This document shows, one piece after another, positions 1,124-38,600 of a stretch of 64,000 nt of DNA. A program made the position numbers and the translations under genes. The stretch's first letter is position 1. Every line of letters begins with the position of its first letter. The DNA comes from Oikopleura dioica (Eukaryota > Animalia > Chordata), in the NCBI GenBank assembly GCA_907165135.1, contig OU015569.1:2852001-2916000 (forward strand). The letters are read 5' to 3'. Under the pieces are notes generated by a model, which saw only the letters and a program-made list of their open reading frames with translations, was not told the origin of the DNA and ran no database searches.

Positions 1124-3151
1124 TCAGGGAATAACTTCGCCACTGGGCAGCCAAGGCTCGCTCCCTCCGTGGAGCTTGATCACGTGAAGAACGGCCTGAA
1201 AAAGGGATCATAAACGAATCGAAGCGGGAAAAGGGATCTTACGTCCTCAATCTCCTCGATGGTGTCACCCGTCACTGAAGCGGTGAAGCAATCGGCGAAT
1301 TCGGCTGAGACCCGCTCGCCTTGCTGGATGATTTTGATACATGTGTCCTGTGTTAGTCTTTTATTCAGCTCTCTGAAGGACAAGGTCAGCCTAGAGAAAA
1401 GAAAAATGCGTGCTTACTGTAGCCATGCTATCTTCTCGTCCAGGACGTTCATGCCCCGGCGGTAGGCGAGTTTTGGCTTGATGTAAATTGCGATTGGGTA
1501 CATGCTCTTTTTCTGCAGCTCTGGAATGGCGTCTCCCCGGACGTCGAGAACGCAGTGAAGCCCTTTGCTCGAAACCGCCTTCACGGAATTGATTGAAGTC
1601 CTTAAAATACGATAATAAAAACATCGCTTATTATATAACCTAAAATCGAGTAGTTCTATAGAATGAAAAAGACGCATGAGGTGCGGATTCCTTTTTATTT
1701 TTTATTTGAGCGGGTCCTCGACTTTAAGACTACAAATGCTGTTATAAAAATAGAAGTTTGACCTTGACGAACATACCCGTAGAGGTTATCGTTGTGGATT
1801 CCGACTTCGAAAAAGAGCCCTAAATCTTTCTGGCGCTTCATTTCCTCCTTTCCGATAAAGTAGTAGCTTCCCACCGCGCCGTTAACCTCGTTCGCTCGTG
1901 GTGCTCTCGTAGTGTCTAAAAAGACGAAATAGACAACTTCAAAGGTGATTAGATTATTGTCTTCCCATACGATAAGAACGATAGTTCTTCTTTACTTCTT
2001 CTACAGAAAAAGGATAGATGTACCCCAATTGCTACTTACGGGGAATGCAGACGCCGAATTTCTGCGGACGATCTTGAATTAAGTCCTCCATAATCCTGTC
2101 TTTCATCGGACCGAGGATGACGATCGGACGCACGTAGTCGATGCTTTGCTGCGATTAAACGATGATGAACATTTAATACAATGGAATGGAGGCTAACCTT
2201 GGTGACAGGCTCGTAAGAAAGAATCCATTCATCTTGCTGATCTGTTGAGTTTAGCGATTGCGTCGTTTCTTGTGCCTCTTTCTAAACAATTTTGATTACA
2301 CCAGGGCTCGTTCTAATTGATCATTTATAAATCACCGATTTTCGCTGGAATTCCGATTGTTACTACTGCAAAGTAAGTGTTGCAAATCGAGAAGCCGTTT
2401 GCGGCTTCGAGCAAGAATAAGAGCGGCTTCTCGATTTTCAGCATTTTACCGAAGTAACAATCGGCATTCCAGCGAAATTATTCACTCAGAAATGAGAACC
2501 GCCGTATTTATTTACCTGTATTTCCAAACTAGTCGATTCCGTCAGCGCCGCAACATTGTCGACGCTCTTCATGAAGGGAAACTTGCGCGTCATCCTTAGC
2601 TTCGTTTTCGGTTTCTTTTTCCTTTTGCCGTTTTGCGCGTGGAGTGTCGTTTCGTTGGGCGGAAGCTGTTCACAGAACTCAAGCGACTTTGGGGTCGAGT
2701 TGAATTTCACTTGGTTTATCCTTTTTCGCTCTTTGCGCATCACTCTGTGTTTAGATGGGATGATCCCGCTAGCGTCAGAGCTGTCTGCCAAGGCTTGCTC
2801 ATCTTCTGCGCTGTTTGTGCACTGAAACAATCCTTACTTTCTCTCCAAACAACCTGTCAAACGAACACTACTTTTCGAACTTCATATCTCTTAAATCAAC
2901 TAAACGGGCAATTCCGACAGTAATCAGGCCCCGCGTGAACAAGTCAGGCCGGTGTTTGTCACTCAGGCACTGAGTGATTTTTGACAATTTGGTGTACCAT
3001 TTTTACAACTGCAAAAAGTCCTGTCTACAGGTTACTCAGGTAAACTCAAGCCTTTACTCTGGTCAGGTTGTTTTTACTTACGACGATCTGAGCTTGCCAC
3101 CATTCGGGGTCGGTCGCATTCGTCACGTGGATGATATCACCGTACTTGAAG
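1124..3151 (-). CDS. dlg1: Discs-large-type MAGUK, 3' part (SH3-HOOK-guanylate kinase), multi-exon; 5' end unresolved
   Basis: Spliced exons read [20 protein letters not shown] (SH3), [29 protein letters not shown] (HOOK), [33 protein letters not shown]|[65 protein letters not shown], colinear with DLG1-4. A possible micro-exon EYRPQ near 4102-4115 resembles the end of PDZ3. Confidence 0.88.
2384..2437. repeat. Short palindromic element (AAATCGAGAAGCCG...CGGCTTCTCGATTT family)
   Basis: Terminal inverted repeat with internal AGCCG-n-GCGGCT; related copies at 5905-5981, 8101-8212 and ~8304-8358. Confidence 0.75.
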
Positions 3152-3480
3152 CTAAAGTTAAACAATTATGAAAAAACTAACACCAAGAAGTAGAAACCGA
3201 ACAAAAAGTTCACTAAGTTCTGAGTGATGTCACAGAGAGTGAACAGTACGGAATGACATTTTTCATTAGCTGAAAAAGAGAAAACGCAATAACAAACGCG
3301 CATTCTCGCCCCGACCGCATCAAATGTTATCTAACTCATTCTCGCTGAATTGACGAAATTCCGATGAAACTATGCTCCCATGCAAATCTGGTGCAAACAC
3401 ACAAGGGCCGAAATACAAGTAGAACTACTTGAACGCGAAAGATTTGTGAAATTCTTTTCAGGAGCTGGCTTACTATCTGC

Positions 3481-3619
3481 CTGAGCTCGGCAATCCGTGT
3501 TGAAGACCTGAGTCAGGGTCTCAAATATATCTAATGCAAAGCAGCCTTGCGTAAACGGCTTTTGATTAAAAATCTTTCAGACCCTGACTCAGGCTTTCTA
3601 CACAGCTCGCCAAGCCCAT
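3481..3619. mobile_element. hAT-type MITE copy (CTGRGCTCGG ends)
   Basis: ~40-bp imperfect TIRs containing CCTGAGTCAGG/CCTGACTCAGG; flanks CTATCTGC / CTATCGGT look like a decayed 8-bp TSD. Confidence 0.75.
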
Positions 3620-4159
3620 CTATCGGTAAATGACTGAAGCATTCTTTATTCTATTCTATCTCGCTTTTTGAAACTCTGTTTTTATTGCAAATTATATGAT
3701 CAGCGTCTAGTAAGGTCCCACGGAGAAAAAAGATCCTCCCAAGTTAGAAATCTGCTTACACCGTGAAATGACATTAATTTGCGAGAAATCATCGGCTTTG
3801 CTTGAATCTCCTTCTTGCCGATCATCGAAAAGAAAATATCAAGTGTTGTGAAAACAAGAGATCCTATTAAATTGAATTCCTGGCTGAGAATTGAATCCCT
3901 ACTTCGGTGCGACCACCCGCCACTTTTTTTCTTTTTTATCTGGCTTAGAAAAAGAAAGAGAGAGTAAATTGCTCGGGCGAGTTTGTAAGATTCTCAGCAG
4001 GGGCCGTGAGATCTGACGTTATATCGCCAATAAATCATGTTTTGTGCCTGTCTCAGCACTTCACCAGCAGGCAGTGTACCTTTTTCTTTCCTTTTACCTG
4101 GGGTCGATATTCTGTAATCAAGTCAGTAAACAGAAAGGAAAAGTCGGAGACTCGATGGC

Positions 4160-4200
4160 CTGAGCTCGGCAACCCATGTGAAAAACCTGAGTCAGGGTTT
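4160..4200. repeat. Solo left end of the same MITE family
   Basis: CTGAGCTCGGCAACCCATGTGAAAAACCTGAGTCAGGG with no matching right end nearby. Confidence 0.65.
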
Positions 4201-5904
4201 CGGAAGAGGTTTGATAAAAGTCGCGCAGATTTCCAAATCAATTGATTTGTCAAAACTCTGGAGAAGCCGTGCTTCGCACGTCTTTTTTCGTCTCGAAGAT
4301 TTAAAAGTAAAGTGGGTGATTCGAAGACAACATAGTTTAAAATTCAATTTGGTGTATTGTGAAAATGTCACAATTATGTTATTTTGTCGAGGCGAGGCAA
4401 TTAAAAATTGAGTAGAAAGCTGGGTCAGCTCTTTTTACTTTATATTAATTTGATAGCCGAAATAGCCAGTTCTTGACAAAGAGTTTCTGACACGCTGCTG
4501 ACAAACAGTCATCATATTGAAAAGGCGATATAATATCGCCGATATTGGAATTAGTGACATGGATTTCGAGTTTTTGCAATTTAAAGTTGCAGATAATGGG
4601 TCCACCGTAATATCGGAATAACCTCAATTCTAGCTCTTTTCATTGAAAAAGCGGATGAGTTGTCTACTTTTCGAATGTTTGACTTTTAGAATGGTCTTAT
4701 TATTCTCGTAATCAGTAATTTGTACAATCAGGCTTTGAAAATTCATTCAAAGAAAAAGTAGAATAGAATCAGTTGAAGATAGCTTCATTACTTAGTGTCA
4801 TTCAGAAGAACTGATTGTGCATTGAGATGATTGATCATTGAAAAATTTGTTCTTCAATAAGAGTAAATATGCAATTATTGAATTTTCCGAAAATATCTAT
4901 TTTTCTCACCTGAGTCCCTTTGAAGGCAATCCGGAGTCAAGAGTAGCATCGTAGTCGAAAAGTGCTTTTACGAAGAGAGTTTTCTTCGCGACAGTTTGAA
5001 TGCTCATCGTTCTCCAACTCTTCCTTTTCGGTGTTTTCAAGGTTCACTCTTATCGGCTCGTTCTTATCAGTTACGATCTTATCGCAAATGGTCTCTCTCT
5101 TGATCCATGTTGTTGTTTTGCGTTTAGGCTGTAAGGAAAGTAGTAGCAACTTCGTCGAATCCGGATTGGCTTCTTTCTTGGGAAGACCTCTCTAGGGGAT
5201 GCTATTAGCAAGAGCCTCCGCTACTAACTCTAATAGCGAGTTTATTTTTTCGTCTTTTTTCTTTCAGTTTTGTTTGAGCTTGGCACGAAGGAGCCAATCA
5301 CGCTCGCGGCTGGTGACTCATCGGCTCGACCCTTTTCGCGCCACCGCGGAAATCTGTTCTTCGAGTCGAAAAACGACGATTCCAGAGACCAACTTTTTCT
5401 AAAGGCTCATCCTTTTTTCTATTCGGAACGAACTAAAGGCCCAATCAGCCGAGATCGGAACTCGCGCGCCAAATACGAAATCGATCGAAATCATCTTTTC
5501 TTATTTTTCTTAAATCAAAGTCATCAAATGAATACTTAGTCAATTATTCTGATATTTGCAATAGTTCTAGTGCAAAAAGAGAGAAAGAAAGAAAAGTTAA
5601 CCTTGAATCAATTGTTGAATTGTTGAAAATTCAAATTTGCAAATGCGAAATTTTCGCTGCCAAATTTTTAAATCGAACGATTGGAAAATTTTACCGCTAA
5701 TTGCGAAAGAAATCCTTCAATATTATCATTTGACCGTGAAGTTTGATAATGGCCATCCATCTAACCGCCCTCCCCCGTCAATTAAAGCCGCTATTTTGAA
5801 AACGCGAACTTTTGCAAGATTCGTTTTTTTGCTTGAATATATCGCGACCTTACTGTTATCTGTAAATGTCTAGAAGATCTTACTAAACTTACAGCTTTGC
5901 TTCC

Positions 5905-34977: not shown

Positions 34978-35910
34978 CTCAAACTCAACCAATTTCGCTG
35001 AAAAAAACTTGATTAGATGTTGTTATAAAAATCAAAAAGTTTTGCAGCTGAATAAAAAATTGTTTCTGAGTTCAGAAAAATCTGGCCTCTCTCTCTCTCT
35101 CTGACAACAAAACAAGACTGAAATTGACAATTTGTTTGCAAGAAAATATTGGTTTTGGCCCTCTAACGACGAAAAGTAGCGCGCCACAATTAGCTCGATG
35201 TGTATCTGTTATTGCGGTTCCGAGAATTTTCCGTTAGATTTTCTTAATTGCCTGATTTCGATCGATTCGAGCTCCCAACTGTCAAAATTTCTGACTGCCA
35301 AGATGAATTTCTGGGATCTTTAGAAGGCAAAATATTCTGATGTTCGCAGTAGAGGAGCCAACAAATGTGAAAAGGAAGTCAGAGTTGACGATGGATCGAG
35401 TCGGTCTTCTCATACTTATTTTAAAGACAAAATAACCCTCTAATGGAGTCTTTTTCCTTGAACCTGAGCTAAGAAGAAGATCTAAAGGAAAAGATGCTTG
35501 TACTGGCTTGAAGAGCTCTTCATAAAATGAGTAGTCGCATATTACTTACAACGTGAAAATGTATCTACATGCCATCAGCTAGATTTAATTTTCGTTACAG
35601 TAAATAAGACCTCAAAGTGAGCGACAAAAGCATAAATCAATGGACAACGCGGGTCCTCGTTTCAAGAGGCTCACTAATTATGTCCAAGTTCTGCTTTTTG
35701 TTTTGCCATTTTTTGTTGAATGGTTTTTTTTTGTCGAGTGCCCCCGGCCCGAGCGTTTGGGCCTGATTGGTGACGCATTTTCTTACCCGTTATCCTCCGT
35801 CGAACTCGCGAGAGAGCAATTTTTATCGCAGTGCTCCTTTCTCATCCCTTTCTTCATATTCTTTTCTTCGAGCAAGATAAACCTAGAAGTAAAGCCACAG
35901 AAGAGCCCGT

Positions 35911-36830
35911 ATGTCAGAGCCAAGTGAGCTACTAGAGACTAACGACACAGCATTCGCGGATGTCATCGCAAACGGAACAACCCTGGCCACAACTACAGCT
36001 TCACCAAAACAGCAAACAGATAGCGGCTCAGTAACTACAGCGGCAAAAGTGCTGCTTGATAAAACCACGGAAAATCAAATCACAACGAGTTTGGCAAAAA
36101 CGACAGCCGCGCCGACAATTTCTTCAACAACTACAGAAATATTAGCAAGCACAGATGTAAGTAGCAGTTAGTTTTATTACATAAAAATAGTGATTTTTTC
36201 TGTTTACATCAAACATAAGATATATGTTCAAAATAAGAGGCTCAATCAGCAGAAACCGTGTTTATATATCATCTTGTTTACAAGCTAAACATGTATTTAG
36301 TTTTTATGATTCTCTAAATCGCTCTTTCCATATTTGGAAAACAGTTTTTCTAACAGCTGACCGTGCAAATTCAAAAGCTAGCTTAATTCTCGCTTAATTT
36401 CATTGAGATAAAATAGTATTAGAATAAATATTATCAAATATTTCTGGCGACGCTTCAAGACTTCAAAAGCAAGTAATTTCGCGTCTTGGACGATTACGGC
36501 AAATTAGCGAGCTTTCAATTTTCGCCGTTTATTCTGCTAATCGACTCTAACCGCCATTTTAGAAGGCTCAAGATGATGGCTTTCGGGTGGTAATAATCGT
36601 ATGCATCGCCGTCGGGGCCGCTCTTCTCATCGCCATCGCCTTGCTCATCGTCGTCGTAAGTATTTAATCCTTTTCAAAATGCAGGCGACTAATTAGTCCA
36701 CTTTCAGATCCGCAAGAAGCGTAAACAAGGGGGAAAATACAACCCAAAAGACTGCGAGAAGCATGCCGGGGTATCGAATCAGTGGAATCATCAAATTTTC
36801 GACCCGCCATTGCCGGAACGTCTTATCTAA
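35911..36830 (+). CDS. Miniature Crumbs-like (CRB3-architecture) single-pass membrane protein, 153 aa, three exons
   Basis: Exons 35911-36156, 36563-36655, 36708-36830 splice in frame: Thr-rich ectodomain, one TM, tail RKKRKQGGKYNPKDCEKHAGVSNQWNHQIFDPPLPERLI*. Confidence 0.82.
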
Positions 36831-36991
36831 CAAGCAGAGACTTAAAAATATAATCTTGCCCACTGATATAAAAACGCATTCAAAACTGTCTGATCTTCAG
36901 TTTCACTTCCACCATCTTTCACCAGGTACAGCACTGTAACTGTATATTTCGATCAACTGCGATTCTTTCACAAGCTCACATGTTCCCAGCT

Positions 36992-37177
36992 CTGGACTCG
37001 GCAACCTGCGTAGAAAACCTGAGTCAGGTTCCGAAGAGTTGAAATGAAAAACCGCATATGCTATAGCGGTTTTTTTTAGATCAAAGCCGTAAAGCGGCCT
37101 CGCAGAATAAAACGCGGCTTTTCATTTCAGCTCTTGAGAACCTGACTCAGGTTTTCCACACAGGTTGCCAAGCCCAG
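36992..37177. mobile_element. hAT-type MITE copy with intact TSD
   Basis: TIRs CTGGACTCGGCAACCTG / CAGGTTGCCAAGCCCAG; exact 8-bp TSD TCCCAGCT (36984-36991 / 37178-37185). Confidence 0.9.

Positions 37178-37518: not shown

Positions 37519-38600
<1,082 letters not shown>

Follow-up and report, generated by a model that had tools for sequence, protein, structure and literature searches.

The window analysed here is a stretch of 64,000 nucleotides (nt) from the tunicate Oikopleura dioica (G000:C2:2,852,001-2,916,000 of assembly OKI2018_I69, a genome of 64.28 Mb in 19 contigs). Within it lies a three-exon gene on the plus strand that encodes a protein of 153 amino acids, probably a short member of the Crumbs family of polarity proteins. 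The exons join in frame to give 82 + 31 + 40 residues and have GT/AG borders; both introns begin with a GTAAGT donor and end in a polypyrimidine-AG acceptor. Exon 1 (35911..36156) codes for 82 amino acids, including the initiator methionine, and forms a Thr/Ser/Ala-rich, acidic, mucin-like ectodomain (36.6% Thr+Ser) with two sequons, NDT at residue 11 and NGT at residue 21. No hydrophobic N-terminal signal stretch was found in this exon. After intron 1 (36157..36562; 406 nt, GTAAGT...TTTTAG), the 31 codons of exon 2 (36563..36655) provide an acidic juxtamembrane segment, KAQDDGFR, and then the transmembrane (TM) helix at approximately 36587-36655, whose core, VVIIVCIAVGAALLIAIAL, reaches a Kyte-Doolittle mean of 3.25 over 19 residues. 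Intron 2 (36656..36707; 52 nt, phase 0) separates the end of the TM helix from the basic stop-transfer cluster, and exon 3 (36708..36830) encodes the 40-amino-acid cytoplasmic tail, IRKKRKQGGKYNPKDCEKHAGVSNQWNHQIFDPPLPERLI, together with the stop codon.

The tail carries two motifs. The first, at 36720..36758, is the FERM-binding motif R5-K-Q-G-G9-K-Y11-N-P13-K-D-C-E17, which fits the pattern RxxxGxYxP with Lys in the place of Ser and has a Tyr-to-Glu spacing of +6. The second is the class II PDZ-binding motif ERLI (consensus E/D-R/K-L/I-I/L) at the C-terminal end (36816..36827), preceded by PPLP. Re-reading the sequence bore out the original prediction on each of these elements: three in-frame exons giving 153 amino acids, a Thr/Ser-rich N-terminus with NDT and NGT, a single TM helix and, in exon 3, a tail with GxYxPxxxE and a terminal ERLI.

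We judge it likely that the locus encodes a genuine short Crumbs protein, with a glycosylated ectodomain of about 90 residues, one TM helix and a 40-residue Crumbs tail, and we infer for it a type III topology and the binding properties of the family. A miniature protein with a Crumbs tail had been proposed for this locus from its sequence, and the tail alignment and the transcripts of related taxa support that proposal. In Crumbs proteins a short tail (less than about 40 amino acids) directly follows the TM helix and bears the FERM-binding motif RxxxGxYxPS and the PDZ-binding motif ERLI (PMC5968619). According to another study, the FERM-binding motif includes an essential Tyr (Y10) and a Glu six residues later (E16) (PMC4359734). 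When nine tails were aligned, K4, R5, G9, Y11, P13, E17, E37, R38, L39 and I40 were invariant, and all of these residues with the exception of K4 belong to the published Crumbs signature. A profile built from the nine tails was searched against 177,635 PDB sequences; its top match was the tail of Drosophila Crumbs (PDB: 4wsi_X/4yl8), aligned end to end with an E value of 0.029, while the next match had an E value of 1.2. The tail is identical to that of the long Crumbs protein encoded in the same genome at 16 of 40 positions without a gap. BLASTP of the tail gave 11 identities over 28 residues with the last exon of the long gene (E 4e-4, as a single comparison) and an E value of 1e-5 with a second short gene, a paralog of 67 amino acids.

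A scan of the whole 64-Mb genome for the DNA pattern GxYxP...ERLI-stop matched two places, the 153-amino-acid gene and the 67-amino-acid paralog, compared with one in a reversed control, and the 153-amino-acid locus is therefore more than a chance occurrence. Scans for ERLI-stop with a preceding Glu or Pro returned 30 places, among which the 153-amino-acid gene alone is Crumbs-like in its immediate upstream sequence; the long Crumbs (L013) is also one of the 30, with its tail split by an intron. Searching the genome by tblastn with either short tail returned only the query locus itself.

The O. dioica genome contains three Crumbs genes: a long one and the two short ones of 153 and 67 amino acids. 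The long gene (G000:C1, approximately 3,990,732-3,996,534, minus strand; L035/L036) comprises EGF-rich exons, a LamG match and a TM helix. Its tail, LRSKRRATGTYS before the intron and PTRHEKQPEVIKQTMWKSLESPEPERLI after it (...RRATGTYS and PTRHE...PEPERLI), has the same length as the 153-amino-acid tail, and the intron is in phase 2, inside the FERM-binding motif after TAC AG. The 67-amino-acid paralog (chr2.g7374.t1, P0009; NCBI name Oidioi.mRNA.OKI2018_I69.chr2.g7374.t1) lies on the plus strand at G000:C5:12,003,809-12,004,056 (L030:1340-1432 + 1477-1587), nested antisense within an intron of a dynein heavy-chain gene. It consists of two exons, encoding MVLSKEAKIGIIVGSIAGFIVITLVIWWICY and VRRKRKKAGEYRPERMERAQIQVNTITSSGNVERLI, with the tail VRRKRKKAGEYRPERME...VERLI and an ectodomain of about 8 residues without sequons. 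Its TM exon has exactly 31 codons, as does exon 2 of the 153-amino-acid gene, and a phase-0 intron follows at the position of intron 2; an ortholog, P0010, is encoded on the spliced contig L042. Four features set both short genes apart from the long one: an intron separates the TM exon from the tail exon, the helix is followed by an R/K-KRK run, the FERM-binding motif contains no Thr, and there is no signal peptide. The 153- and 67-amino-acid genes are paralogs of each other. Two further loci with LamG matches were considered as Crumbs candidates and rejected. The one on C4 (G000:C4:5,325,379-5,329,776, minus strand; L033) is a CELSR/flamingo-like receptor with seven TM helices (7TM), and the one on C1 at 6.66 Mb is not Crumbs-like downstream. 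The C4 candidate contains a 1466-amino-acid open exon with LamG, EGF, GAIN-like and 7TM regions, as in an adhesion G protein-coupled receptor.

Several observations weigh against the assignment to Crumbs. The match of the nine-tail profile to Drosophila Crumbs is of marginal significance only, and a profile of five tails matched the same protein in PDB at an E value of 1.1. A phmmer search of PDB with the single tail sequence returned no Crumbs and only spurious antibody matches, and the same tail, searched against 1.84 billion representative proteins, recovered close relatives only and again no Crumbs. Exons were queried singly in these searches, with the database proteins P0002, P0003 and P0008 serving as full-length proxies for the 153-amino-acid protein. 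Pfam assigned no family to exon 1, 2 or 3, each searched by itself, and gave generic TM matches only, with no family, for the full-length relatives. The FERM-binding motif retains four of the five defined residues of RxxxGxYxPS (R5, G9, Y11 and P13), the Ser being replaced by Lys. The Thr sites for aPKC are absent from RKQGGKY in the 153-amino-acid motif, where the long Crumbs has RRATGTY; these two sites are typical of bilaterian Crumbs and are also absent in C. elegans (PMC5968619). The ESM Atlas look-alikes of P0002 fall in SMAGP, glycophorin A, TMEM154, opalin and syndecan clusters, and none of the clusters near P0002 is named as Crumbs. The 153-amino-acid model was absent among the proteins returned from the protein database for OKI2018_I69. 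No splice junction at the locus was seen in RNA reads, all of which come from a divergent lineage that carries this species label (5-20 reads aligned per run) and do not constitute evidence against expression. Lastly, an exon-by-exon search of the O. dioica genome did not identify an ortholog of PALS1, a PDZ partner of Crumbs: the sole match for L27_N was weak and lay in a coiled-coil protein, and none of the three L27 matches was near a guanylate-kinase match.

The look-alike clusters, the generic TM/juxtamembrane character of the Pfam matches and the failure of single-sequence searches to reach Crumbs would fit a different origin, in which a small mucin-type glycoprotein of the glycophorin C/SMAGP/syndecan kind independently gained a 4.1/FERM motif and a class II PDZ ligand. 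A basic-GxY motif together with a PDZ-binding end occurs in many small TM proteins, and proteins of the glycophorin C/SMAGP type share the type III arrangement: they lack a signal peptide, expose a mucin-like N-terminus on the cell surface, cross the membrane once, and carry a juxtamembrane 4.1/FERM motif as well as a PDZ ligand. We nevertheless regard such convergence as unlikely, since agreement with Crumbs extends over the whole 40-residue tail, including its length, R-xxx-G-x-Y-x-P, the Glu at +6, a PP shortly ahead of the C-terminus and exactly ERLI. Moreover, the sole meaningful profile match in PDB is Crumbs, and the ungapped identity to the tail of the organism's own long Crumbs is 40%. 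Glycophorin C-type tails end in EYFI-like sequences and have another Tyr-to-Glu spacing, whereas the tail sequence, spacing and ERLI end of the 153-amino-acid protein are Crumbs-like.

The short Crumbs gene can be followed into related taxa. The phmmer search with the 40-amino-acid tail identified three relatives, P0002, P0003 and P0004, all of them close. P0002 has 153 amino acids and a tail 90% identical to the window tail, while P0003 and P0004 have 102 and 62 amino acids, respectively. A profile word search added P0007 (103 amino acids), P0008 (120 amino acids), P0011 and P0012. P0002 is encoded by an uninterrupted open reading frame (ORF) on L038, a 1105-nt Logan contig of run SRR26381724; P0003 is encoded on L039 and L040, the former ending in AATAAA plus poly(A), and P0008 on L043. 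In a genomic contig from the TARA metagenome (L041), from the taxon of P0008, a phase-0 intron separates the TM helix from IRKKR, exactly at the intron-2 position. Because of this intron, we take the uninterrupted ORFs of the relatives to be spliced mRNAs. These transcript contigs contain the same architecture in 102-153 amino acids, starting at a homologous Met with in-frame stops upstream, and an N-terminal hydrophobic segment was found in none of the relative proteins examined. With ORFs that start after in-frame stops and lack such a segment, hidden signal-peptide or EGF/LamG exons are largely excluded. The absence of a signal peptide and of an EGF/LamG ectodomain, as stated in the original prediction, thus agrees with the relatives' transcripts, which contain no such exons. 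Exon 1 of the window gene has no Pfam match to EGF-like or laminin-G repeats either. EGF and LamG domains are also absent from CRB3 and CRB-3, both accepted members of the family.

The gene model could still be incomplete if signal-peptide or EGF/LamG exons lay upstream of 35911, possibly beyond the neighbouring gene. The region in question (34978..35910, plus strand) separates the start codon from the ATG, at approximately 34977, of a divergent neighbour on the minus strand, which places the gap at about 930 base pairs (bp), as had been noted. An in-frame TAA at 35890-35892 precedes the ATG of the 153-amino-acid ORF by 18 nt, and AG dinucleotides at 35899-35900 and 35902-35903 sit between this last in-frame stop and the ATG. 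These AGs, the origin of all RNA reads in a divergent lineage and a signal-peptide-like ORF upstream (ATG 35680, MSKFCFLFCHFLLNGFF...) speak for missing exons. We consider them quite improbable, given that four independent transcript contigs from relatives begin at the homologous Met with stops in the 5' untranslated region (UTR), that only about 930 bp are available before the neighbour and that the long Crumbs gene is on another contig. The signal-like ORF was rejected as an upstream exon. In near-identical TARA metagenome contigs it carries a 2-nt T-run indel, so that its frame is not conserved; this polymorphism would break the sole in-frame splice path found, and no conserved in-frame splice path exists. 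The T-run, at 35725-35733, is T9 in the window and T7 in the TARA contigs L026-L028. The similarity of L026 to the window stops at approximately 35550, which suggests a structural difference farther upstream.

The three parts of the protein differ in how they evolve. From the window's own lineage, near-identical DNA only is available, in the form of P0001 on the TARA contigs L026-L028. Relative to this 95%-identical allele (P0001, L026), exon 1 shows four non-synonymous and two synonymous changes, and among more distant relatives its sequence is essentially unalignable. The tail exon shows 13 differences in the RNA reads of the divergent lineage, 12 of them at third codon positions, and the only amino acid replacements are S->T and H->Q. 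These exon-3 reads run through the stop codon into a conserved 3'UTR block at 36953-36991. Since differences in the tail are mostly at third codon positions while exon 1 changes freely, the sequences point to purifying selection on the tail and TM helix, with the ectodomain preserving its composition and sequons only. At least five related taxa have kept the whole architecture, with tails 50-90% identical to the window tail. We conclude that the locus is a real, conserved gene; both short genes have conserved counterparts in relatives that are presumably other appendicularians. Elsewhere in the locus, the end of intron 1 (36501-36556) can be aligned to divergent-lineage reads at approximately 90% identity, which is not the case for exon 1. 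The same reads continue unspliced into exon-2-like sequence (TTTAG followed by ACGAGCAGCGATGAG...); unspliced RNA, carried-over DNA or a conserved element within the intron would account for this.

That the locus might be a non-functional relic, whether a decaying copy of part of the Crumbs 3' end or an ORF arisen by chance, is highly improbable, because for all the weak constraint on the ectodomain and the failure to retrieve the gene as an annotated protein of the assembly, its architecture is intact in those five or more taxa, one relative's transcript is polyadenylated, tail substitutions fall on third codon positions and the splice sites are intact. As the 153-amino-acid model was not returned from the protein database, the gene may be unannotated, and the annotation may have to be extended to include it.

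Compared with vertebrate CRB3 (Crumbs homolog 3, ERLI isoform), the 153-amino-acid protein has the same short, domain-less and, in O. dioica, probably glycosylated ectodomain, single TM helix, tail of about 40 amino acids, FERM motif and ERLI end, and it likewise coexists with long EGF/LamG Crumbs paralogs (CRB3 as described in PMC4359734 and PMC2064851). A CRB3-type length of about 100-150 amino acids without recognisable domains is found both in the 153-amino-acid protein and in its relatives of 102-153 amino acids. The O. dioica protein differs in its longer (about 90 amino acids), Thr-rich ectodomain, in the Lys after Pro in the FERM motif and in having no aPKC Thr sites. Furthermore, vertebrate CRB3 has a cleavable N-terminal signal peptide, whereas the 153-amino-acid protein and its relatives have none.

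The premise of the original prediction that short Crumbs proteins are known only as vertebrate CRB3 does not hold. As described in PMC4359734, C. elegans CRB-3 (C35B8.4) is also short, with 100 amino acids, a short domain-less ectodomain, no predicted signal peptide and an apical localisation, and its TM helix was proposed in that study to serve as an internal endoplasmic reticulum signal. The 153-amino-acid protein resembles CRB-3 as an invertebrate short Crumbs without a signal peptide in which the Tyr and Glu of the FERM motif are conserved (PMC4359734). It differs in its C-terminus, which is EGLI in CRB-3 rather than ERLI. Given the great distance between nematodes and tunicates, their short forms may have arisen independently. 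A triple crumbs deletion in C. elegans is viable. With the long Crumbs proteins, Drosophila Crb and that of O. dioica, the 153-amino-acid protein shares the tail length and the pattern RxxxGxYxP...E...P-x-ERLI. The long proteins are set apart by their EGF repeats and LamG domains, and that of O. dioica has GTYSPT with both Thr residues. We found no literature report of a tunicate short Crumbs. PMC3620549 used an O. dioica crumbs sequence, which it calls the shortest.

Given the absence of a cleavable signal peptide, we hypothesize that the most likely role of the TM helix is that of a reverse signal-anchor, giving a type III protein with its N-terminus outside. The acidic DD before the helix and RKKRK after it would fit the positive-inside rule and would leave the N-terminus, rich in Thr and bearing the sequons, on the extracellular side. 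The ectodomain of about 90 amino acids is probably unstructured and N- and O-glycosylated. On the cytoplasmic side, by analogy with Crumbs and CRB3, ERLI would recruit the PDZ domain of PALS1/Stardust or that of Par6, and FERM proteins such as moesin or Yurt/EPB41L5 would dock on the juxtamembrane motif at the apical membrane. FERM and PDZ binding and an apical localisation are thus predicted for the 153-amino-acid protein from its likeness to characterised family members. The aPKC phosphorylation switch on FERM binding has probably been lost, since both aPKC Thr residues are absent. A MAGUK gene of the MPP type lies in the window at approximately 1,400-5,100 on the minus strand, 31 kb from the 153-amino-acid gene. 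Its guanylate-kinase exons occupy 1471-1605 and 1764-1916, and it has an SH3-like exon (ALFDYDA) at approximately 4909-5043. No subfamily, PALS1 or other, could be assigned from its guanylate-kinase exon.

Crumbs sets the apical domain of animal epithelia, and the share of its ectodomain in that function is a long-standing question. In O. dioica, a compact chordate genome carries one long Crumbs and two minimal ones, one with a mucin stalk of about 90 amino acids and one with almost no ectodomain, which amounts to a natural dissection of tail-only function. The interest of the locus lies mainly in this occurrence, in the sister group of the vertebrates among chordates, of two minimal Crumbs genes beside a canonical one. 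It also means that short Crumbs proteins without signal peptides are not limited to vertebrates and nematodes, which bears on the timing of the origin of CRB3. Tentatively, and with more doubt than belief, we raise the possibility that a short Crumbs was already present in the common ancestor of tunicates and vertebrates, so that CRB3 would not be a vertebrate invention, and that appendicularians split it into a glycosylated form and a near-naked TM-tail form, both without a signal peptide or an aPKC switch. If so, the 67-amino-acid form would be nature's equivalent of the intracellular-only Crumbs constructs used in experiments. The tail, at about 40 residues, is too short for a resolved tree with CRB3, and the introns of the short genes differ from those of the organism's own long Crumbs. 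Oikopleura has turned over most of its introns.

Downstream of the stop codon, the start of the 3'UTR (36831..36991, plus strand) contains the block at 36953-36991 that is conserved with the divergent lineage. The reads of that lineage skip 36831-36952, and the joint from 36830 to 36953 is present in six of them. The block is followed at 36992..37177 by a palindromic miniature inverted-repeat transposable element (MITE) of 186 bp, whose 64-nt arms are 88% complementary. A genome-wide search listed 100 MITE matches, with each orientation counted separately, of 961 first-look candidates; those listed are spread over the genome, and the near-full-length matches among those listed are approximately 70-77% identical. 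Since the similarity to the divergent-lineage reads ends exactly at 36991, the left edge of the MITE, the element appears to be a lineage-specific insertion. The neighbouring gene downstream, in convergent orientation, encodes a C2H2 zinc-finger protein (37742-38363, minus strand; Pfam zf-C2H2_15, 1.3e-14, plus zf-H2C2_2).

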